From positions 11,966,001 through 12,030,000 of the forward strand of contig OZ281501.1 of the NCBI GenBank assembly GCA_965637545.1: DNA of 64,000 bases. Direction: 5' to 3'. The DNA is from Phallusia mammillata (lineage: Eukaryota). Positions within the stretch are counted from its first letter, which is position 1. Every line of letters begins with the position of its first letter. The position numbers and the translations under genes were made by a program. The notes under the pieces are model-generated. The model saw only the letters and a program-made list of their open reading frames with translations. It searched no databases and was not told the DNA's origin. This document shows, piece after piece, positions 1 through 46,867 of this stretch.

Positions 1-1581
1 ATTGTGCGTTGATTTAATTTGTTTAATATATTTATCGTGATGTAACGACCAAAATTTGATTTACAATGAATTTTTGAACTCCTGGTCACGATCACGATGA
101 TAGCAGTTAATGTGCCAAACTCGTTCCCCCTTAAATTATTTAAATTTTGCTTTAGATTTAAATTGTTATGCGCTAGAACCCTCCAAAAGTTATCTCAACT
201 ACTCCATTTTTTACTGCCGTATGCTATTTTTGTTATTTTACTGCAAACGTTTCAAAAATTGTTGTTATTATCGATCGTTCAAAACTAGGAAACCATAACC
301 ATGCAGACAATAAACTGAGATGCTGGTAGTGACGTCAGACAAATGTGAACGGAAATGGAGATAACACAAAGCTTACAGTGTGGGTATCCACGTCACTTTT
401 GGGAGCGTTTAAACTGTCTTCCCATCAAATCCTCACACACTGATTTCTGCTACATTTTTACTACATCAGAAATGTTTTGACGTAAAAGTATTATTACTAT
501 AGTTATTTTTATACATTGTATCCCAAGAATATACCAATAGCCCAAAACCTGTGAGCAGTAGACGTTTAGGCGTCGATATTGCATGAAACAGTAAAACTTA
601 CATGGTCATAATAATCAATGAAATTCGCTCACCTTTGTGGTCCTTGTTTGATTGTTCTTTCTATGCTTTCTTATTGGCATTAACGTCAGACGGTTGTGTT
701 AAATTGTGTACACTTTTTTCTGCGCCACAGTTGGTGTTGCGTTTGTAAAAGTGAAAAACAGCGTTTTTCAGGATCGCAAAAACGACAAGTCAAACAAGAC
801 AATATTTTGTGGTCATATAAAAGGGCCTCGCCACAGGTATGTTTAAAACTTGCCAACTTACCGACCTTGATAAAGAGTTTAAAGCATGAAACGGGAGCCT
901 AAAAACTAATGTTGTACAATTAAATTAGGCTTGGAAACTGACATTGAATTGTTAATTTAAGCTTTTGAAACACATGGAACAACAAATGTTTAGGAGATTT
1001 GCATTAACTTAGCAGCAATTTACTAATTGTAGTGCATATAACTTACTGAGTTTAAGTTTACGGTTAAAAGAAAACAACCTGTAGCTGACGTCACGCAACA
1101 ATGGCAAAATACAAACCTGATGCTTTGTTGTGCTGGTTCCGCTTTTTACCTTTATTGGTGTACAATTATCTCAGCGCACACAGTTCAACCAGCAGGATAT
1201 GGGTGTCAATATTTTTTAATGTTTTGCATTGTTGCAACATATGTGGTACATTTTAGGCCTGATGAGTTAAATCATTTGTATGTTGCTTCATGATTATAGT
1301 ATGTTGAGCTTTTTACTGCTTTAAAATGGCACAAAAATGTTGTGAAGTTAATAATCTGCAGAAAGTAAAAATTGTGCACATTTACATCCCTAGCCAATTA
1401 TCTTGGTTCTTTTGCTGTCCATCTTACTACTGTCGATTCTGCAACCAAAACAATGTATAATTCCGTAGTAGCATGCAGTAACTTTTGGGAATATATATAC
1501 ATTTATATTTATTTTTACAGCGTTTACATCCACAGTTACAATAACATTTAGTGAAGATTTGTGGCTATCCTGAAACGAAAA

Positions 1582-4500
1582 ATGAAAAGAAGTGCGAAGA
1601 TTTTATCAGCTGTAGACTGGGGCAGTGGTACAGAAAAAACATCTAAAACTTCTGCGCAAGTAAAATCGGATGAAGAATGCGTTGAAACGAAAGTTGGGAC
1701 ACAAACTGGTAAGTTACGTCTTAGCCATTAAACAGTTGTAAATGCAGTTCATGGAGAAAGAAAGATACTTTGTTTTATCATCCTGAAGTTTCGCAACAAT
1801 GCTTTAAAATACCATCGTTTGTCAAGGAACCAAAAAATAACACTTTGAATGCAATCTTTCATTGCTTTATTTTACATTCAAAACCAGCCAAGCGTATCAA
1901 AACAAATAACCATTAAACGTGGCAGTGTTCAGTATAGAATGTGTTGCAGCGATCGTTAACTGTTGAATGTTGCCGGATTACAGGACTTTTGGAAATCAGC
2001 AACAAAACCAAGTTGACATGCAGACAGGGTAAGTATACACTATTGTATTTGTCCGTATGGTCAGTAAGAGATTTGTTCTACTGAACCAAACAAAATATTT
2101 AGGTCAACCAACAAACTCTACTACGTTTGTCATCACCGACAGCACTATCACAAATTCTTTGCTTGGCTCCGATTCTGTACATATTGAGCATCACGGTAAG
2201 CATTTATTGTTGAAGCGCTATCAAATTAAAAACTAGGCTTTTAGTTCACTGGTGGATTCTCGTTGCTACAGCTTTGGTAAATATTTGTACCAAGTGTTTG
2301 GACTTTACCGCAAAAAACAAAAACTAATACAGATGGCGTAAAGCAACCAAACGCAATAATCACTAACGACTGTCAGTCTGTAAGAAATCTTGAAAAGCGA
2401 GTTAGTGTACTTTTTTTCAATATAGTCTTGGTTGATGGAAAAAAGCACGTGCATGTTAACATGCTTGATTAGTGTTGCTAATTTTTAGGCGTACTTTCTC
2501 AAAGTATCAGAAATAAACAAAGGTGTTTTGATTTTTCAGACTATATGTTCCTATACACTCAAATTTGTAATGCACTAACCAAAAAATGAATAATAATCAA
2601 CGATAGATAAATAATCATTGTTAGTGTAAAAACTGTTTGTAATCCTAGAAAACACGCAACAGCAGGCAACAAAACTTGAAATGCCGACGACAGTGGACAA
2701 TGTAAAACAACCAACAGCCAACTTCATACAAACCGAGGACTACGTTAGAGCCGAGGGCAAAGTTAAGAATGCAACAGTAGCCATATTGCACGTTCATGGA
2801 TTTCCCGGCACAGGAAAATCTGAAATAGTTCGTCGTTTGGCTTCCAAATTTCCTTTTACGGGGGCCTCAATAAGTGTGAAGTGGCACATTGAGTGTCAAG
2901 ATGGAAGCCAGAATGTCGACCAGGAGCTTACCGCTATTGTAAAACATCTCAAACAAAATCAGTTTGCCATTCATGGAGGTCAGGGAGTGGGCGATGAGCT
3001 TTCTAAGGGCAGAGCAAAACCTTTTGTCACCTTACTGCGATCTTTACATGTCCCTGTGCTTATTGTTATCGAGGACCCCAAACCGAGCGATTTTGCAGTT
3101 TTGCGAGACTTGCTCACGACTGTCGACGATAAACGTACACAATCTGATAACGACCATTTTCACATTTACATCACCTCTCGTAAAAACGCTGTGGCTTTGC
3201 CTAACAGTGACCTTCAAGCTGGATTACAGTGCTACAAAGGTCACAAGGTTGATGGATTCTCGGAGAGCGAAGGATTGCAGCTTCTGCTTCCGTCAGACCC
3301 CAACGTTTCTGAAGTTGACCGTAAAGCAGCTCTGCGGATAATCGCTTTAAATAGTGGATCTCCTCTTGGTCTGATTGCAGTTAAGGCAAACTGCCGAAGG
3401 TCGCGCATATCTTATGAAGAATATTTGGAGATGGCAGAGGACGATAAAATGGAGACAGAGGTTCAGGAGCTCGAATCAAGCCAACTGCAGGAGGAATATG
3501 GCGACAACTTCAGGCATCTTTTCCGGTCTGTTGTTTTGTTGTTAAAACCTAAAGAAAATGCGGAGGATCGAATTTACCACGATATTTGGCAAGTAATGAC
3601 AAGTTTGTGCTTCTTGCATCACGGAGACGTTCCGAGGCAGTTAGTCGGTAAAATAGCGCAGAGCCTGAATAACACGGAAAACGACGATATCAAGCACACG
3701 TCGCAACGAAATACCGTGGTCTCCGGAAACGTGATTTCACATTTGGAAGATTATGGCATCTGCAAAGTGGACGGGAGCGGCTACGCAGAGACAACTGTCT
3801 CCTTTCATGAAGTTATATTTCGTGCCGTTAGGGTTATGTTAAAGTTGGACCGTGGTCATGAAATTTACATCAAGAAGCTACAACGTGCACTTCTTGCCCT
3901 CAGTGCGATAGTACACAAGGATTTGCGCAAGTCCGTTGACAACGTCTTCATGAACAAAGTGGCGCCGCAAATTCAAATTGGACTAGCACACGCTCGGGAG
4001 CAGTTTAAACTTGAAGATGCAGTTACACCAGACAACTTTCTTTTAAGAATGTGCGTTTGTCACCTTAGCGAGGTGATTGGTATTGTTAAAAGTCTTGGCG
4101 TCTTGTCGACAAAGCAGTACTCCGAAAATTGCCTTGAGTTTGCAGCAGAAATAATACTGAAAACGGTTGCTGGTCTTACTGGGGCAAACTTCGATTCCAC
4201 TATCTTGCAGCCAAATGAGAATCTCTCGACAGATGAAGTAGGAGAGAATATTGCGAAGAACTGCGTCACGGCTGGAAATGTGTTGTGTAAATCACTGCCA
4301 ATCGACTTGCTGGATCGTTACTTCACAGTCGTTTTACAAATGCAAATATCCGAATTGGACTTCCTGCAAAACAACGCGCCTGGCAATAAAGTGGTTCAAT
4401 CTGCAAAATTAGCAACCAAGAAAAAGGTGGGTTTGAATTCTCAGATTATGCGTGGGCTGCGTGAATCCAAGGAGATATTTCTCAACACAGAGGCGCACTG

Positions 4501-5302
4501 CTCGGTTTTCTTCGCAGAACGCCTTGCCTCAATCCTTCACACATGGGGCCGCGTATTGCTGTATTACCACATACCGATAACAGCAGACATGCGGTTGAGA
4601 TATATGTGGTTTTCCAAACTGTCCAACAGCATTTCACGGCACTGTCAACGACTCACTGATGTCCACATTCTCTTTGAACATTTGACTGGTATCAGTTTGG
4701 TCCCAATCATGCTTAAGGGTTTGAGTCAATGCTCAATTGAAGAGAAGAAAAACACACTGATGGAAGCTCATGAGTCGTTAACCAAGATGTTGGACAACAA
4801 CGAAAATGCTGTAACATTCTATGAACACGGCCATATAAAGGAAATAGAGGGATCAGTTTAAACGCAAATGCATCTTCATCGGTTTCTGATTCGTGTCAAT
4901 ACCAAACTGCTAGCGCTTCCCAACTTTCAACAGTCAAAAGACTTCGTCTCAAACTCTGATCAAGTCTATGACGAACTGTACAAACTTGCCACCAAGCACA
5001 TAACGTGGATCATGGCTCCTAAGTGCATTGTCTACTGTGGAAAGTACCAAGCGTGTATAGGGAACTACAACGTGGCGGTAAAATGCTTTGATGAGGCAAT
5101 CCAGGCTGGAATTAAACAGTCCAACAATCTATTTGCCTGGGCCTGTTACAACTTTGCAAGGGCAGTGGTATGTGGCAACGTGATTGGCTACAAAGAATCA
5201 GCAATAGCGAAATGCAAAGAGGCTCTAAAGAATGATGATGACACGGACAGGGATTTGGTCGAAAAGCTGAAAGATCACATGACAAAGTTGTCCGAAATGT
5301 AA
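1582..5302 (+). CDS. NLR-like STAND NTPase (NB-ARC/AP-ATPase) with helical TPR-like C-terminus; one in-frame TAA at 4859-4861 (disrupted allele, pseudogene or base error)
   Basis: ORF 2681-4861 has Walker A GFPGTGKS, Walker B VLIVIED, sensor-I HIYITSR, GxP motif SGSPLGL and MHD-like SFHEV in NB-ARC order. ORF 4868-5302 continues in the same frame with TPR-like helices (GNYNVAVKCFDEAI; FAWACYNFARA). Phase-consistent upstream exons by hand: 1582-1708, 1984-2028, 2103-2195, 2333-2379, 2666-5302. The upstream exon model is less certain than the NTPase call. Confidence 0.8.
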
Positions 5303-5742
5303 ACTTGAGCGTTTTGATTTTTTAAGGAAATGTACATTCGCATAGCAGCTCGATTAACTTTTAAACCGGCAAACTTTTTCTTCTCTGTCGGATGTTGTAA
5401 AAAAATGGATTTGTGAACTAACAATGGCAGTTGTATTTTTGGTTTTTTAAGCACGTGCGCGCGTGTGGGGTGTATGAAAAAAACACCATACGGTACTGTT
5501 CATTGAATCCATTTCACATTTTTGTATTACACTCTTTGCTAGATCGTTTAAAACCATTGTACAGTTTCCTTTTACTTTAAAAGGGACATGATTTTTTTGA
5601 GGTAGTGTGTGATATACGATATATACATAAACTTAACGTCGATCCTGATGTAAAATTATTGCACGATAAAATTATTAAAAAAGAAAATGAAAAAGCATCA
5701 AACATTCGGTGCGAGTGACGAAGAGTTGATTATCACAAGTTG

Positions 5743-8733
5743 TCACAGTTTCATGATCAACGCTGCAATGAACGCCAAAATAATGATGATGCAAAACAAA
5801 ACAAAAAACAAGTTAAAAAAAGATTTTTGCTTTCGATGTTTCTTGACAATCCTCGTATGCAAAGGAAACAGCATTCGTGACTTCTGCGTTAAAATGGTAT
5901 TTCTGGCTGGTTTCCACTGACCTGGGCCGACCAGTCGGTATTGATACGAAGAACATACTTCGCACAACAACTGCCAGTAATAAAGTCACAACAGGATGGT
6001 TAACACAAAACGTTATATTATAACCATACTGTACAAAAAGACTCTAGAAGATAGGCACAACCAATTTTCTCAAATGGACTTTTTGTCAAGCCTTGCAAAG
6101 TTTACATAAATAACGTAATGGCATTCAAATTCGTACAAAGCTTTGGGAAAATAATGCATTGCCTTCGTCACCCAGCAGACAATTTAATCATAATTACCTT
6201 TTTGGCAAGTTTGTAGTCAGTGAAAAACAGTTTCACCAGATTAGGTTTTACTCCGATTTGTTCGGCAATTTGATCCATGTAGTCCACGTGATCAACCTTA
6301 CGAACGAAGAAATATAGTTTATCTGTTGTTCCAAAACAGAAAAGCCTCTGTGCCAACGTACTTCGATTGAATGTCTCTGACTGGCGTAAAATCGTTTCTT
6401 CATCTTTAATCGTTTGTCTTGGATATCTTTCCACATGACGTATTCAGTGGGAAGTCTAGCAAGGCCTGCAAAAACACACAAATATTATGGTGAAAAACCT
6501 CGTTTGGACAGCAGAAACTATTTAGGTATCAGGGCAATGTTTACATGCCAATGCAAGCAGTAAACCTAATACATTAACACACATTTCTTAATTTGCTCCA
6601 AACAATTTTAATTTATGTTTTTCGTCAAACACTGGTTTTTATTACAAAGTTTGCTAGCAAAATTTCGTGTGGAAAGTTGCCGAACCCATGTACTCATGGA
6701 AAAAGGCTTTTACAACTGTACATAATATCCCACCTTTGAATACACGCGTCGCCCATCGGCATTGTATCTCGGAAATCGGGTTGACAGCTCCAAACGCCTG
6801 GACATGGCCAATAACTGCCAGGGTATGATTAGTCAAGGACATAGGCCACATATATTTGTACAAGTCGCCTGCGTTGTCTTCTACCTTCGTTAAAAACCAA
6901 AAAAATAATCAATTTTCTTTTAGAATATATTACATGTGTTGTACGTCTATCAGAGTAATTTGAACAACCTACGTTTAAAATCGAATTCGACAAAAATGGA
7001 AACGAGTATTTATATCCTGTTGCAAACACAATACAATCCACCTCCTCTTCTGTGTCATCATTAAATAGAACGCCAGATTCCCTCAAACACTTCACGTTAC
7101 ATTTGATTTTAATGGAACCTGTGATGATCCTTGAAGGTAAATCGTCGTTCATAGTCAAGTGCTGAATATGAAAAAGTAAACAACGGCGACGTATTAGAAT
7201 GTTTATTATAGTGGATTAATTGTAACATACTGATTTTGCTACAGTACTCACAAGGCTTAGTTTATTCACTATAGGACTTTATGACATGTTGTACATTTGT
7301 TGATTTTTTTGCACAGTTCAGCTAATGCCACAAAAAGATACAGTTTGAAACCTGATTAAATGGGCCATGTTCGGGCATTAATCCATAATGAGCATGATCA
7401 AATTTTTTCATCAACATGTCTTCAATGAAGCTTCTTGTCAACTTCTCTGGTAAGAAGTCCTGCATCAACTTTTGATATCTGCAACATTGACTATTTTCAG
7501 GTTGTTTTGTTTTTAAAAGTTGAAAGTTACTCATTAGTTAATTGTGAGTTGTGTATACATGTTTATAAATAGACTGGCTTGTTAAACTACACAAGTAATT
7601 CAATGTTGTAAATCAAAAATTGACATATTCATAAAGGAAAAAAATGTAGATACCTACCTAGTTACACCAAAAAAATCAACTGGCATTCCATAAGGTCCAA
7701 CACGACTGAAGACCCAGGCACCTCTTCTGGTGCTCAGGTATACCTGTCAAAGAATGCTTACTTTTTTAGAAAATAAACAAAATGTAAAACAGTTTGAACT
7801 GTACCTGCTTAGCATGGGAACTCAGCTCAACAGCAATGTCAGATCCTGAATTTCCTACACCTATCACCAAAACTTTCATATTTTCAAAACCCTTGAAATT
7901 TCTGTAATCTTGACTGTGGATAATTTTTCCCTTGAAAAGGTTTGTGCCTAGAAGTAAATGACAATGAGGACATTTTTTTAATTTTGGAAGTTTTATCTAC
8001 CTGGAAAGTCCTGTTTCGGAAAATAAGGATCAGCATGATGTCCCACAGCCACCAAAACACCATCAACTACATGTTCATCAATTGTTTCGTCATCTTTCTT
8101 TTTTGTCTTTAAAGTCCTTTTGTTTGTTTTTTAAAAGTGGTTGATTTAATAAATGGTTTACTCATAAAACGTTGTTATTTTACCATTTTCCATTCTTGCC
8201 AAAGTCCAGGTGACGTACACATGACAGAACTTCAGTCCCAAACTGGATGTGCTCATGTAACAAAAATCTGAAAAACAATGAATATATGCTTATTGTATTT
8301 ACATGTTCATGTGTGTAAAATTCATATGGTTTTGATTCCTTAAACCCTAAACTAATGCAATCAGGTACCTATTTGCATATCTCCTATAATATTCCTGTAC
8401 TTTGGAATGATGCAAGAAATTTGGCCAGTCTTGGGGCATTGGAAAATCTGAATAGGACATTAACTCCTTACTAGTGTTGATGACAGTAGACTCATAAACA
8501 GTTGCTCCATTCTTTTTGCCTTCTTTATACCTCCATAGACCTAGGTTACATAAAAAATGTTGGTATTTTGCATGCTGCAAATCTGTTTGATAAGTTTTGA
8601 GGATTGAAACAGTACCTCCAAGGTCATCTTGTTTTTCAAAACAGATAGGCACCAATCCTTCATCCAGACAGCATTTTATTGCTGCCAATCCACTTGCACC
8701 AGCACCAATAACAGCAATACACTTTGGACCCAT
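5743..8733 (-). CDS. Flavin-containing monooxygenase (FMO, dimethylaniline monooxygenase family), copy 1, 12 exons
   Basis: N-terminus [16 protein letters not shown] (FAD-binding GxGxxG), [26 protein letters not shown] (NADPH-binding), [26 protein letters not shown], hydrophobic C-terminal anchor. All 12 exons join in frame by GT-AG. Confidence 0.95.
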
Positions 8734-9049
8734 GTCAGCAGAATGTTGTCATCAAACTCAAGTTCGCTTACTTAGCAAATATTCAGATAACATTGGGTTT
8801 AATGATTGACTAATGTAAAAGCAAATATTATACAGCTGTATTGGAAAATACATCAAATTATCACAAGACATTTGTTGTTAGAGCACAAGCCAGTTTTAAA
8901 CAGCATATTTAACATGGCACAGTGAATTGAGCAAGGATAGAAATAATAATCACAGAGTGACAAAAACAAACAACACAAAATATTTCCACAGCAAAATTAA
9001 ACTAAGTAAAACCAAAAAAACAAAACAAATGATTTCATTTTGAAAACAA

Positions 9050-42383: not shown

Positions 42384-43784
42384 TCAAGATCTATGTAAAG
42401 TTTTCCTTCTTCTTTTCCTGTGATTACCAAGTTTAAGCACAGGCGACAATTGAGGTTTATCAGGTGGTGCATCAACAACTTTACTGCATTGTACATCATC
42501 ACAAGGACCTGTGTCTGTATCTTCATTTGCCAGTGAAAAAGGTGGTTTGGGCAAGTCATCATCTAAATCAGATTCTTCTGAGTCATTTGGTTTACGTTTC
42601 TTGCAGGTTTGTTTTATTTTTATAGAAGTGCTGTCATCATCAAAACTGACACATTGAGTTAATGGAAACTTCATTACACTTTCTGCTGAACTTTTATCTG
42701 CCATGGTCATTGAATTAATATATCCTTGTACCTGCATTTCAGGTGACACTTTTGCATTTTGTGTGTTAGTTTTTAATTGATTTGCTTTGAACTCTTTTAA
42801 ATTACTGTCAGTACATGGGCTTTCAGTGTAGTCAAAACATTTTGAATCATCTTGGCAGAAAATGTCTAGCAATCTTTGCGACAGCTCAATGAATTCTTCA
42901 TTGATTTCCTGCTTTGTAATTGCCCTTGTTTTCAAAGACATATCTAGAGAAGCCTTTGGTGATGAGCTCTGTTTGGGTTGTTTCTGTTTACTTGGAATGT
43001 CTCTGAATCCCTCTTTCACAATCATATACTTTACTGCATCCCTTGATTTACTCGGTGACTTGTAGAGCAGAGCAAACCTCTCATTTTCCTGTTTTATTAA
43101 CATGATTTTGGTAGCTGCAACATGACTCCAAGTCGCGCCAAGTGCAGGTATCATTACCCCACTTGATCCAATTGCAGAGAAACTGGTTGTTACTTGGTTG
43201 ATCAGAACAACTGCCAAGTTATCATTAATGGCTAAGGATCGAAGTTTTTGAGCAAGATCATTAAGAACTTTGTTTCTGGTCTTCATGTCCTCTTCAGCTC
43301 GGACACAGTTAGCAATACTGTCCACAACTAATAATCTTACATTAGGGTGGGTTTGGATAAAGCTCTGTAGTTGATGGATAGTTGCTATAAGGTCGACAAT
43401 TGTTAAACATTTAAACAGGTAGATTTTCGACATACACATGTCAATAGTAAAATTACTGCCACCATTCTGGCAAAGGTTTGTACAGTGTTGTACCACAGAT
43501 TCTGATATATCAACAAGTCTGTTGGTGGAGAATGTGTTTTCTGTGTCAATATAAATTGCCTGACCTTCAGCACCTCCAAGGGCAGAGGGAATTTGTACAT
43601 TGACAGATAACTGAAATGCAAGTTGTGTTTTTCCACACCCACTCTCACCAGCAATCTCTGTGACACTGCCTATGGAAATGCCACCACCTAAAGCTTCATC
43701 CAAAGACCGACAAAATGTGACAATACTTGATTGTTGTTTGGTAGATAACTCTTTTTGTAGAATTGAAGCTGCAGTCTGAAACAT
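42384..43784 (-). CDS. RAD51C: DNA repair protein RAD51 homolog 3 (RAD51C), intronless CDS, long C-terminal extension
   Basis: SIVTFCRSLDEALGGG, Walker A GESGCGKT, QLSVNVQIPSALGGAEGQAIYIDTE, Walker B LLVVDSIA, PALGATWSH, GFRD match the RAD51C pattern as I recall it. The first ATG is at 43784 (the ORF track starts at an upstream TTG). Confidence 0.88.
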   Translation of the reverse strand: MFQTAASILQKELSTKQQSSIVTFCRSLDEALGGGISIGSVTEIAGESGCGKTQLAFQLSVNVQIPSALGGAEGQAIYIDTENTFSTNRLVDISESVVQHCTNLCQNGGSNFTIDMCMSKIYLFKCLTIVDLIATIHQLQSFIQTHPNVRLLVVDSIANCVRAEEDMKTRNKVLNDLAQKLRSLAINDNLAVVLINQVTTSFSAIGSSGVMIPALGATWSHVAATKIMLIKQENERFALLYKSPSKSRDAVKYMIVKEGFRDIPSKQKQPKQSSSPKASLDMSLKTRAITKQEINEEFIELSQRLLDIFCQDDSKCFDYTESPCTDSNLKEFKANQLKTNTQNAKVSPEMQVQGYINSMTMADKSSAESVMKFPLTQCVSFDDDSTSIKIKQTCKKRKPNDSEESDLDDDLPKPPFSLANEDTDTGPCDDVQCSKVVDAPPDKPQLSPVLKLGNHRKRRRKTLHRS

Positions 43785-44449
43785 GTCATTGATAAACCTG
43801 TGTACTAGCAAAAATTAAGGCTTTGCTTTTAGCTTAGGACACTTTCGGTCGAATGTCAATTTTGCATCGCACAAAAGCACGCCTTTCAATAAAGATTCCA
43901 ATGTACCAATGACAATTAGGTTATTGTTGACTTGTTTTGGTAAATAATTAAATATATTGATTTCGCGCACTTTCGTCAAAAATTTTCTTCGCTCATCCAA
44001 AGTATGATGATAAAATTTTATTTCAAATACCACAAAAAATAAAAATATTTTAAATATAAACCCATAAATTTGATTTTTAAAAACTTCAAACTATAATTTT
44101 TCATTTAATTTAGAAAAAAACGTTGTTGGATTAGGAAATAATGACTAAAGCATCTTTAAGTAACTTTAGTGCTAAATTCATAGATTGACAGTTAAATACC
44201 CCCATTTGGTGAATCCCCCAATCAGCAACTGTGCGTTGTTTGTTTTCTAAGTTTTGTAGCCATGAAAATACTTGACACTTACCTCGAAAATCGCTTCATG
44301 GGCCGAAAAAGTACCGCGGACCAGTTTGGGAACCGGTGATTTAGCCCAGTTCCGAGGTATATCAAAAATACTCAAGCAGTCACTTCCCATTAGCACACAG
44401 TCGCAGCTCTTGCCCGCCACCCAACGGTTAAAGTTTATCTTAACCATTA

Positions 44450-45148: not shown

Positions 45149-46867
45149 TTACACCACTGTATCAACTTCCTCCACGACTTCGTTGTTTTCTGGAGGTGGT
45201 ACAGGCTCGTTCGCTTTCTTCGGTGCGCTCAAGGCACCACCTTCGTCAAATTTCTTTCCCGCCTTTGACGCAAATAAAGCATAAAGGGCGTGACCGATCA
45301 CAACCGCCAGAGAAGAAATGATAACCAAGACGCCGAATTGGCTAGGAAGGGGCATAAACAGCACAAGAATGAATCCGATCATATCCATTGACATGCTGAG
45401 CGACATTTGTACGCCATTCACAATGCCTCGCTCTTTTTCAGCCACGTTCTCCTGAATAAGCTGCGTCACTGTTAGATCAAAACTCCAAAGTCCAGCTCTT
45501 GCTATAATGATGCCGCTAAGCAGCAACCAAAGTGACAGAAAAGATGGAGGTGGCACCACTTCGTCCAGACACTTGTAGAAGATTCTTGGCGATAAACCGT
45601 GCTTGTCATCTTCCACTGGGTGAGTAACGTTATCGTATACAGGAGTCATTGCTGCCACGGTTACGTTCGTGGTGTTCATTGCAGGTGTAGGAACCATGGC
45701 TAGTTTTGTGGTTAAAGCTTCGTACATGGTTGGGCCTTCAACGCCATAATGTCCTGTATAGGCAAAGAAAGGACTGCCAGGCACAAAAAGTGAAATCAGG
45801 CACGGAATAAGAGTCAGATTTTGGAAAATTCCCGAGTACACACCAGTTTTGACCAAACCAAGGTACTTTCTCATCAGGGGAAACGCATACGTGCCAGCGA
45901 TTCCAGCTACCGCCGAAGCTCCCAGGAGGATTCCCACCAAGAACTCGCTAAAGCATTGGTTGTACGCATACGAGGTGGAGACATATCCGAAATTCAAGAC
46001 AGTTAGGAAAAGACACGCCAAGCCGACACCTGCTTTTGTTATGGTTTGTGCCATATACAGCTTCCAGCCATCTATGATAATAATAATAAACCCAAACATC
46101 CTGCGCCATACTGGCTCATCTTTTTTATCCTTTTTCTTGTCTTTTTTTTCAGAACCACTTGCCTCCCCATTGTGACCATCTTCCTCACCGTCTTTGCCAT
46201 TTTGAAGAGTCTCCAATTCTTCTGTGTCCCCGCCCTTGGTATGAAGCGCAGGGGTGCGGTTATACACAATGCGGAGCAACATATATTCCGTAACCATCGA
46301 GCACAAATTCCAACCCACGATGAAGTAGGCACCGCCAGTAAGTGAGGTTAACGCCATGATCTGACCGCACGCAAGAGGCGAAAGGATTTTAGTTACTAAA
46401 TCTATTCGCCGGACCATTGCATTTAAATCAGCGAGAAACGAGGTCTTTCCGGAAGCCACAACAACAATCCAGTCCTTTTGTATGATAATGCCCGTACCTG
46501 TGCTGGCCAGTAAACCGATGGCGCCCAAAACAATAGCGCCTACTTGTACAGCCGGAGCGTAACTTGCCTCGCGATCACCAAACTCGCGGTTTACGATAAG
46601 GATTGCCGCGCTTAGCGCCACGGCAAGGTTTTGAATGAACAAGCACACTGTAACTGCATACAAACGCGGCCTCCTGTCTATCCAATCGCCGACAAGAGGC
46701 GCAAAGAGCAGGACACTGCAGGAGAGAGTAAGTCCGTACGCTGCTGTGAGAAACAGCGAAAAGGGATCGAGATCCAAAAGGAAGAGAGGAATCGCAAAGT
46801 ACCACATACGATCGCCCCATGACGACAAAAAGTGGCCGATGTAGATGATAAGGGATGTTGACACCAT
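45149..46867 (-). CDS. SLC40A1: Ferroportin (solute carrier family 40 member 1) paralogue A, intronless CDS
   Basis: GHFLSSWGDRMW, LVGDWID, QKDWIVVV, LNAMVRRIDLVTKILSP, ARAGLWSFDLTVTQLIQENV, ERGIVNGVQ are ferroportin signature segments; complete 572-aa ORF. A splice acceptor lies in the 5' UTR near 46926. Confidence 0.96.
   Translation of the reverse strand: MVSTSLIIYIGHFLSSWGDRMWYFAIPLFLLDLDPFSLFLTAAYGLTLSCSVLLFAPLVGDWIDRRPRLYAVTVCLFIQNLAVALSAAILIVNREFGDREASYAPAVQVGAIVLGAIGLLASTGTGIIIQKDWIVVVASGKTSFLADLNAMVRRIDLVTKILSPLACGQIMALTSLTGGAYFIVGWNLCSMVTEYMLLRIVYNRTPALHTKGGDTEELETLQNGKDGEEDGHNGEASGSEKKDKKKDKKDEPVWRRMFGFIIIIIDGWKLYMAQTITKAGVGLACLFLTVLNFGYVSTSYAYNQCFSEFLVGILLGASAVAGIAGTYAFPLMRKYLGLVKTGVYSGIFQNLTLIPCLISLFVPGSPFFAYTGHYGVEGPTMYEALTTKLAMVPTPAMNTTNVTVAAMTPVYDNVTHPVEDDKHGLSPRIFYKCLDEVVPPPSFLSLWLLLSGIIIARAGLWSFDLTVTQLIQENVAEKERGIVNGVQMSLSMSMDMIGFILVLFMPLPSQFGVLVIISSLAVVIGHALYALFASKAGKKFDEGGALSAPKKANEPVPPPENNEVVEEVDTVV

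Follow-up and report, generated by a model that had tools for sequence, protein, structure and literature searches.

An expressed NB-ARC-TPR gene of the ascidian Phallusia mammillata with a segregating nonsense allele, from a family likely to comprise NLR-like sensors

In the present study, we analyzed a 64,000-nucleotide stretch of the genome of Phallusia mammillata (NCBI GenBank assembly GCA_965637545.1, contig OZ281501.1, positions 11,966,001 to 12,030,000 of the forward strand), hereafter referred to as the window, in which positions 1582 or 2057 (two possible start codons) to 5302 on the plus strand are, in our confident but not unreserved judgment, an expressed STAND gene of the NB-ARC-TPR (tetratricopeptide repeat) kind, belonging to a family that most likely serves as intracellular NLR-like sensors of danger or non-self. 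The NLR-like architecture, consisting of a short N-terminal module followed by an NB-ARC module and TPRs, is supported by the motifs, profile matches, and predicted structures described below. An immune or non-self role of the family is suggested by analogy, because the N-terminal position is occupied in its relatives by TIR, Death, CARD, or DED domains, and this view is strengthened by those fusions together with tandem gene clusters and a segregating nonsense allele. The reference haplotype carries this recent nonsense allele, whereas other individuals encode the full protein.

The gene model was based on open frames, splice sites, and Logan contigs from four sequencing runs of four studies (X1, X5, X8, and X10, with X1, X5, and X10 being RNA-like), which were aligned to positions 1400-5500 of the window. 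In X1 and X10 contigs, which are from two studies, position 2195 is joined directly to 2649, with the 453 skipped nucleotides having GT..AG ends; therefore, the gene is transcribed and spliced. The main open frame, 2681-4858 on the plus strand, encodes 726 amino acids (aa), and beyond a TAA codon at 4859-4861 the same frame is open to the TAA at 5300-5302. The elements of the gene are as follows.

1582..1708, plus strand: putative coding exon 1 with its ATG at 1582, an open frame, and a GTAAGT donor at 1709, by which the overall frame is kept
1984..2028, plus strand: putative coding exon 2, with an AG acceptor at 1982-1983 and a GTAAGT donor at 2029
2057..2059, plus strand: alternative in-frame start inside intron 2, the ATG of which reads stop-free through exon 3
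2103..2195, plus strand: small exon 3 encoding the short N-terminal motif (..TTFVITDSTITNSLLGSDSVHIEHH), with its 3' junction confirmed by spliced X1 and X10 contigs
2196..2648, plus strand: intron of 453 nt (GT..AG), with the joint of 2195 to 2649 in contigs of two studies
2649..5302, plus strand: large last coding exon for the NB-ARC and TPR parts, covered by X1, X5, and X10 contigs and ending in the TAA at 5300-5302
4859..4861: polymorphic premature stop, TAA in the window and TAC (Tyr) in other samples, from X1, X10, and X8 contigs and orthologues
4862..5299, plus strand: terminal three-TPR module missing from the product of the TAA allele, in the same open frame (match to Hop/PP5-type three-TPR domains at Z 12-13; TPR_2 E 0.0018)

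The predicted product is 972 aa long from the ATG at 1582 (exons 1582-1708, 1984-2028, and 2103-2195) or 930 aa from the ATG at 2057, and an unspliced X1 contig begins at 2057. Exons 1 and 2 lie in gaps of contig cover in X1, X5, and X10, and such gaps prove nothing. The initial annotation placed four tiny exons upstream of a single CpG-rich exon of approximately 2.6 kb. The supposed fourth exon (approximately 2333-2379) falls inside the intron skipped by the contigs of two studies and was removed from the model, while the single large exon was retained, although its frame is broken by the in-frame TAA in this assembly. Regarding base composition, only the G+C content of this exon is raised (44.5%, higher than its surroundings); its observed-to-expected CpG ratio of 0.91 is no higher than that of the flanks (0.83-0.95; 0.79 for the whole window), and, thus, the exon is neither CpG-depleted nor a CpG island relative to its surroundings.

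The NB-ARC motifs were located between 2798 and 3820 in the order that had been proposed from the letters alone, and their key residues are conserved across the family.

2681..3991, plus strand: NB-ARC module with nucleotide-binding domain (NBD), helical domain 1 (HD1), winged-helix domain (WHD), and helical domain 2 (HD2), aa 1-437 of the large open frame, as assigned by the AlphaFold2 model, VIA-align, and Foldseek
2798..2821, plus strand: Walker A/P-loop GFPGTGKS, with G40, G43, G45, and K46 invariant in the family
3056..3079, plus strand: Walker B VLIVIEDP, with E131 and D132 nearly invariant
3161..3184, plus strand: RNBS-B/sensor-1 HIYITSRK, with H161 and Y163 invariant
3353..3379, plus strand: GLPL motif SGSPLGLIA, with S225, G226, P228, L229, G230, and L231 invariant
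3800..3820, plus strand: MHD-like SFHEVIF at the end of the winged helix, with F375 and H376 nearly invariant, following the WHD hairpin E361-375 of the model
3992..5299, plus strand: TPR-like superhelical sensor arm, from the model of the corresponding part of the orthologue

The MHD position reads F-H-E and not M-H-D. The AlphaFold2 model of residues 1-726, computed with the family alignment, had a mean predicted local distance difference test score (pLDDT) of 86.4 and a predicted template modeling score (pTM) of 0.84. Its top Foldseek match was Apaf-1 of the human apoptosome (E 8e-9), followed by Avs3, CED-4, SAMD9, NRC4, and ZAR1. VIA-align superposed residues 3..437 of the model onto 117..543 of CED-4, from the NBD to HD2, at Z 15.6 (364-372 residues, root-mean-square deviation (rmsd) 4.3), and Apaf-1 was matched at Z 14.8; ZAR1, NRC3, and NRC4 were matched at Z 14.5-14.7, and Sr35 and RPP1 were also matched, the set made up of Apaf-1, ZAR1, NRC, Sr35, and RPP1 spanning Z 13.5-14.8. 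ORC/Cdc6 proteins were lower, at Z 12-13.5, mostly with approximately 220-235 residues aligned. As modeled, the protein has the NBD-HD1-WHD-HD2 fold of AP-ATPases, and the structure prediction that the initial annotation had recommended thus agrees with its proposal.

Among 18 family members, NB-ARC was matched by 12 at E<=0.01 (best E 4.3e-10) and is tied with nSTAND6 as the commonest Pfam family, while NACHT was matched by a single member, and weakly (E 0.0033). The strongest matches to NB-ARC (PF00931) in the genome are paralogues of this NB-ARC-TPR family, at 30-44.7 bits and above the cut-off, and nothing of Apaf-1 strength was found in this search, which runs exon by exon. The window protein itself has other sub-threshold matches to nSTAND6, AAA_22, and AAA_16, and weak matches to NPHP3_N, AAA_16, and AAA_22 occur among the window protein and family members. 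As the first reading had stated, no Death, CARD, TIR, LRR, or WD40 domain was recognized in the window protein by Pfam scans, which covered the large open frame, exons 1 and 3, and family members. The features of an Apaf-1 orthologue, an N-terminal CARD and C-terminal WD40 repeats, were therefore both absent from these Pfam scans, and the C-terminus is predicted to be an all-helical TPR structure.

As the stop interrupts the reference copy, the sensor half was modeled on the corresponding part of the orthologue (P0001:410-883) with the family alignment, which yielded a pLDDT of 90.7 and a pTM of 0.89, and the model was searched against 48,161 chains. The best match was the TPR domain of LGN (Z 20.8, 301 residues aligned, rmsd 3.4), followed by Pins TPR (Z 19.5), the peptide receptors Rap and NprR (Z 15.3-17), TPR subunits of APC/C (Z 15), domain III of MalT (Z 13.2), and the TPR sensor of an archaeal STAND protein (6mfv, Z 12). 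The last 150 residues match the three-TPR peptide-binding domains of Hop, PP5, and Sgt2 at Z 12-13 and rmsd ~2.5, and it is this terminal stretch that the product of the TAA allele lacks. Sequence-level support for TPRs is weak (TPR_2 E 0.0018 over the last 144 aa; consensus TPR E 0.006). The initial annotation described approximately 400 aa of helical sequence with TPR-like units at its end; the helical nature and the TPRs were borne out, whereas the model indicates that the C-terminal ~470 aa are a TPR superhelix throughout and not at the end alone.

A first protein search returned seven relatives, including two 'uncharacterized' proteins of Ciona intestinalis, LOC100185875 (41% identity) and LOC100178506 (31%), and the closest orthologue, P0001 from a Logan contig of DRR090687, is 66% identical to the window protein. 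The Phallusia genome (240 Mb; G000, with contigs numbered C1 onward) has 17 matching places, which correspond to at least 16 copies, mostly single open frames of 850-930 aa; this answers the call for a paralogue count in the initial annotation. Tandem clusters are present at C6 19.29-19.42 Mb, C2 29.51-29.54 Mb, and C8 14.16 Mb, with a pair on C3. At C8:14156077-14167838, on the window's own chromosome piece and 2.1 Mb away, lie three more distant NB-ARC-TPR members (24-26% identity, 851-913 aa). The database protein P0008 (CAB3262187.1, Phallusia mammillata) is 100% identical to paralogue L003 over 845 aa.

Using the NB-ARC region as the query of an exhaustive profile search, we recovered 447 proteins at E<=1e-3, 74 of which were at E<=1e-30; named family members are from Phallusia, Ciona, Clavelina lepadiformis, and Styela clava, and weaker relatives are from amphioxus, bivalves, Lingula, the bacterium Jidaibacter, and the fungus Fusarium. 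A word-based protein search with the family alignment added no members to those of the single-sequence search. In a midpoint-rooted maximum-likelihood tree of 35 NB-ARC regions, built without an Apaf-1 sequence, all ascidian rows form one clade (support 100/98), within which the window protein groups with P0001 and Ciona P0002 (LOC100185875; 95/94), while nine Phallusia paralogues represent a separate species-specific expansion (100/100). The term lineage-specific in the initial annotation is accordingly apt for ascidians as a whole, with named members in four genera; however, the window gene itself is, as judged from the sequences, a conserved one-to-one orthologue of LOC100185875 that stands outside the Phallusia tandem expansion.

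Relatives of the window protein differ in their N-terminal modules. In Clavelina, the same NTPase is preceded by TIR_2 (P0038, E 1.6e-19) or Death (P0067, E 9e-12; P0081, E 5.6e-18), the amphioxus relative P0096 has two CARDs, relatives from Mytilus and Tegillarca have a DED, and the Fusarium match is a typical fungal PNP-NB-ARC-TPR NLR. Since the TIR member nests among members with short N-termini in the tree, N-terminal modules have been swapped within the family. Database entries of family members are uncharacterised, with the automatic label 'NB-ARC domain-containing protein' on one Clavelina entry, and our literature search found no paper describing an ascidian NB-ARC-TPR family.

Regarding the in-frame stop, position 4861 is C in X1 and X10, which gives TAC (Tyr) in spliced transcripts, and A in X8; X5 has no contig there. 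In X8, a single contig spans 4118-5495 at a depth of 90 and has 12 other differences from the window; therefore, X8 represents a different haplotype sharing the TAA. Tyrosine also occupies this position in the orthologues P0001 and Ciona P0002 (GAVYTQM, against GSV-stop-TQM in the window), and past the stop the frame is open for 146 codons, which share 71% identity with the orthologue. The proportion of nonsynonymous differences between the window and the orthologue (pN) is 0.18 past the stop and 0.19-0.24 in the rest of the gene, and that of synonymous differences (pS) is 0.72-0.80, which is saturated, as is the synonymous divergence (dS), so that only pN against pS is given. Because of the TAC samples, the X8 haplotype, and the low pN past the stop, we regard the stop as recent and polymorphic, neither an assembly slip nor the mark of an old pseudogene. 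A check of population polymorphism, also recommended at the outset, thus revealed segregation of TAA and TAC among samples.

With the stop lying in the last exon, the TAA allele should give a protein of 783 or 825 aa without the last three TPR units. A small intron across the TAA was considered and rejected: the only nearby GT..AG pair (4856-4913) is 58 nt apart and would break the frame, and the contigs run straight through it. X8 is heterozygous at 3919-4048, where it has two contigs at half depth. Across the gene, approximately 1% of sites differ between the samples and the window, which is typical for highly polymorphic ascidians.

The N-terminal tail is short and domain-less, with a beta-prone motif of approximately 25 aa, and the sequence comparisons below, of which those on the window exon itself provide modest evidence, suggest that the N-terminal module of the window protein is probably a diverged copy of a motif that recurs in Phallusia. 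The consensus is Q-x-I-D-M-x-x-A-S-V-x-G-S-x-I-V-G-V-Q-G-N-V, and the motif is located at the N-terminus of NACHT-LRR NLRs, probably also, as a diverged copy, at that of NB-ARC-TPR members including the window gene (exon 2103-2195), and at the putative C-terminus of LRR-ZU5-UPA (FIIND-like) proteins. The N-terminal exon of the orthologue (L014:572-661, located on a genomic contig and flanked by an acceptor and a GTAAGT donor) is conserved and encodes HFGQLIDIKSSTITGSVVGAKSVHIENRYY. When N-terminal peptides of NB-ARC family members were combined into a profile, it weakly matched (E 0.3) two C6 exons with strong splice sites, both followed at a distance of 1.5 kb by NACHT exons (NACHT E 4.7e-17). 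A profile from four NACHT-upstream exons of this kind matched at least 39 genome places (best E 5.7e-13), many of which precede NACHT exons by 0.65-1.5 kb. The Phallusia NACHT-LRR protein P0212 (UniRef, nr) has the motif twice at its start, as KQEIDMKDAKVDNAVVGVQGDVHQ and as NVNMGSASVAGPSNIGNQ, and its predicted gene model splices the motif exon to the NACHT exon.

A further match to this motif, at C3:2530383-2530451 (E 1.8e-5), is the putative last coding exon of an LRR-ZU5-UPA gene, the upstream exons of which encode RI-type LRRs, ZU5 (C3:2531466-2531735), and a UPA-like part, joined by strand, order, and spacing alone; the ZU5 Pfam match is weak (E 0.0073) and has one stop inside. If this is one gene, the motif occupies the position that a CARD or death domain has in NLRP1, CARD8, or PIDD. 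The NACHT-LRR and LRR-ZU5-UPA sets are linked because the profile from NACHT-upstream exons alone also matches the LRR-ZU5-UPA tail. In the putative last exon of this locus (L044, G000:C3:2529800-2539799, minus strand), the NLR N-terminal motif reads QEQNVHMEGAIVDGGSIVGSQGNVD and is followed by a stop, and near-copies of this tail are found at C3:17085423 and C3:12533285.

A test profile of 28 Phallusia motif instances, none of which was from the NB-ARC family, scored the orthologue exon at 19.1 bits (reached by 0 of 1000 shuffles) and exon 3 of the window at 5.6 bits (reached by 4 of 1000), while the N-termini of Ciona and Clavelina were not above shuffles with the motif profile. The exon-3 peptide of the window, searched across the genome, found only the exon itself; tblastn of N-terminal peptides against the flanks of paralogues gave nothing convincing, and the motif profile produced no score above the antisense control on their 1.5-kb upstream flanks. 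A look-alike upstream of paralogue L009, NITGSVGNVAIV, reached only 1.2 bits. No Pfam match at E<=10, with RHIM and fungal prion models included, was obtained with any N-terminal or motif peptide. At the level of Pfam models, RHIM membership was rejected for the same lack of a match and because the window reads S-V-H-I-E, without the I/V-Q-I/V-G core, and a by-eye likeness of VTIG/NVTIG to RHIM in Ciona and Clavelina is not supported, as these N-termini did not exceed shuffles with the motif profile. A complex prediction for three copies of P0212:30-110 scored 0.01, which speaks neither way.

Considering these sites of occurrence, it is conceivable, although we hold the idea only tentatively and consider it doubtful, that this Gly/Asn/Gln/Val-rich beta motif of approximately 25 aa replaced death-fold domains in ascidians as a shared homotypic, possibly amyloid-like, signaling currency. 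Oligomerised sensors would then nucleate motif-motif assemblies, similar to fungal NWD2/HET-S or RHIM in the necrosome.

The same genome has other motif copies and NACHT exons. Eight motif matches lie within 120 kb at G000:C5:21878567-21996049 (plus strand; L038 and L039), several of which have two to four tandem motif-like copies (for example, NITMPHANIGGSVVSHGDTNIG then NIQMRDTQVSGGSLVGVQGSVNI) ending at a stop as if C-terminal, and no NACHT exon was found within the next 8 kb. A query with one NACHT exon gave 266 candidates, and 93 of the 93 scored were at E<=1e-17; they are mostly single open frames of approximately 450 aa in tandem clusters, several with stops, and form a large repertoire at C1 31-35.4 Mb, C2 9.1-9.9 Mb, C6 24.4-24.7 Mb, and C4 26-30 Mb.

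The window protein may be compared with several known systems. Vertebrate NLRs are of the NACHT-LRR type, and APAF1 is NB-ARC-WD40. With CED-4, Apaf-1, and Dark, the window protein shares the predicted NBD-HD1-WHD-HD2 fold and the Walker A, Walker B, GLPL, and MHD-like His in the same order, and a ring-forming switch would by analogy be expected in it, too. Unlike these proteins, it has neither a CARD nor WD40 repeats and instead has a TPR sensor, a short N-terminal motif, and membership in a multi-copy family, and the similarity in sequence does not exceed the level of a weak Pfam match. The NB-ARC fold (Z 13.1-14.7) and GLPL/MHD logic are also shared with the CC/TIR-NB-ARC-LRR proteins of plants (ZAR1, NRC, and RPP1), and the family has a TIR-NB-ARC member of its own (P0038); however, the sensor is TPR and not LRR, a CC domain is absent, and the lineage is independent. 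STAND logic links the window protein to vertebrate NACHT-LRR NLRs, and in Phallusia an N-terminal motif of this kind is also used by NACHT-LRR genes (P0212), whereas the NTPase in the window is NB-ARC and not NACHT and LRR, PYD, and CARD are lacking.

Closer parallels are found among Apaf-1-like proteins of invertebrates. CED-4/Apaf-1 homologues are expanded in amphioxus, sea urchin, and Nematostella, with TPR replacing WD40 and DD, DED, CARD, or TIR at the N-terminus (Zmasek et al., 2007; PMC2246300). The view, expressed in the initial annotation, that NB-ARC/NACHT-TPR architectures are typical of fungal and bacterial sensors in opposition to animal ones consequently drew too sharp a contrast. 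The window gene shares NB-ARC and TPR in an invertebrate deuterostome with these proteins, and the amphioxus CARD-NB-ARC proteins P0096 and P0085 are among its nearest non-tunicate relatives; on the other hand, the ascidian clade is separate in the tree, and the window protein is without a death-fold or TIR domain. The NB-ARC domain was not detected in C. intestinalis by Zmasek et al. (2007; PMC2246300), and no Apaf-1 has been found in any ascidian genome (Krasovec et al., 2023; PMC10959488). The window gene is thus of a known kind, the animal Apaf-1-like NB-ARC-TPR proteins, and occurs in a lineage reported to lack NB-ARC; at its N-terminus, a short motif takes the place of a death-fold or TIR domain.

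NB-ARC-TPR NLRs with amyloid motifs in fungi and bacteria (NWD2/HET-s; BASS) and the RHIM-NACHT proteins of amphioxus also have a short motif at the effector position followed by a nucleotide-binding oligomerization domain (NOD) and TPRs, and motifs probably related to that of the window protein are present on other immune-type proteins of the Phallusia genome. The Fusarium PNP-NB-ARC-TPR and Jidaibacter STAND-TPR proteins are distant matches of the family. Differences are that the window peptide, which reads VHIE, has no Pfam amyloid or RHIM match and that no motif-bearing partner gene adjoins the window gene; its amyloid-likeness is only putative. Tunicates appear to be without RHIMs, and amphioxus has RHIM-NACHT-repeat proteins (Kajava et al., 2014; PMC4262963).

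If the gene product functions as its family mechanics suggest, the TPR arm would keep the ADP-bound module closed, a ligand in the TPR groove would free it, and nucleotide exchange would follow. The NB-ARC modules may then form a ring like that of the apoptosome or resistosome, the clustered N-terminal tails of which would recruit downstream signaling or cell-death partners.

Several observations weigh against the interpretation of the gene as an NLR-like NB-ARC-TPR sensor. The window protein alone scores only 14.8 bits (E 0.017) against PF00931, below the cut-off of 23.5, so that the profile check recommended in the initial annotation gave a mixed picture: 12 of 18 family members match NB-ARC at E<=0.01 and TPR_2 matches weakly (E 0.0018), but the window protein by itself does not reach the NB-ARC cut-off. 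A sequence-profile search of the PDB returned no STAND chain, only a consensus TPR (E 0.006), and, therefore, the NB-ARC assignment is drawn from Pfam matches among family members and from the predicted structure. The sensor-1 Arg of the window protein is replaced in most Phallusia paralogues, and among the upstream exons only that ending at 2195 is supported by contigs, exons 1 and 2 and the start codon being putative. Furthermore, the reference allele is truncated, and the product of this copy may be inactive or misregulated, while the gene, being a conserved single-copy orthologue rather than one of the fast-expanding paralogues, is as compatible with a conserved function in the cell as with one driven by pathogens.

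This conservation between Phallusia and Ciona is also what lends some weight to an apoptosome-type adaptor, in which the family replaced or descends from Apaf-1 in tunicates and activates caspases during development or stress rather than sensing pathogens. In its favor, CED-4 and Apaf-1 head the structural matches, Death, CARD, or DED domains occur in relatives, and the top PF00931 matches in the genome are members of this family, with nothing of Apaf-1 strength beside them; tunicates are also reported to be without Apaf-1 and caspase-9 (PMC10959488). However, the fold does not single out the apoptosome, since plant NLRs lie within 1 Z unit of CED-4, and the window protein has neither a CARD nor WD40 repeats; moreover, at least 16 clustered copies and a TIR-bearing member are more like an immune repertoire, and a common nonsense allele is hard to reconcile with an essential death adaptor. 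Descent from Apaf-1 is outside the reach of a tree built without its sequence. We regard such an adaptor as unlikely. Less probable again, at about as low a standing as a serious proposal can have, is a housekeeping role outside immunity, in which the protein would be a scaffold or regulatory NTPase comparable to NPHP3 or to TPR adaptors: a single copy is conserved between two ascidian genera, weak Pfam matches to NPHP3_N, AAA_16, and AAA_22 occur, and the best TPR matches, LGN and Pins, are cell-polarity scaffolds. These TPR matches are generic, however, and NB-ARC is the commonest (tied with nSTAND6) and best-scoring family across members, the predicted fold includes WHD and HD2, in common with CED-4 and Apaf-1, and relatives are fused to TIR, Death, CARD, or DED. 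An orthologue of a known housekeeping ATPase, a clear one-to-one case of which the initial annotation had named as refuting its proposal, did not appear in any protein search run.

The stop codon raises the question of whether the window copy is a young pseudogene or null allele, the relic of a sensor gene. The in-frame TAA stands where orthologues have Tyr, and the same A recurs in X8 on a haplotype with 12 other differences. Against this, spliced X1 and X10 transcripts carry TAC, no other stop or frameshift is present in 2.9 kb, and the segment past the stop is equally constrained (pN 0.18); being in the last exon, the stop should allow the mRNA to escape nonsense-mediated decay and to yield an NB-ARC protein with a shorter TPR arm. 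For these reasons, namely the TAC transcripts, the single stop, the constraint past it, and its last-exon position, we consider the locus to be a functional gene with a truncation polymorphism and not a dead one, and a relic to be quite improbable. The reading as an NLR-like sensor gene is accordingly the one that we prefer.

Elsewhere in the window, a neighboring gene at 6100-8800 (minus strand) with several small exons resembles a flavin-containing monooxygenase. The region at 8-16 kb is strongly CpG-depleted (observed-to-expected ratio 0.25-0.43), unlike the NB-ARC gene, and two long open frames of 475 and 572 aa are located at 42384-43811 and 45149-46867, both on the minus strand.

Tunicates are the closest living relatives of vertebrates. 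The occurrence in four genera of ascidians of a divergent NB-ARC-TPR family, whose members have TIR, Death, or short-motif N-termini, alters our view of the evolution of NLR and apoptosome components at the base of the vertebrates. The system is also experimentally approachable, with a natural truncation allele in Phallusia and a short motif common to NACHT-LRR and ZU5-UPA proteins. Phallusia and Ciona are model organisms with transparent, injectable embryos, which make it practical to test the signaling partners of an NLR without a death-fold domain.

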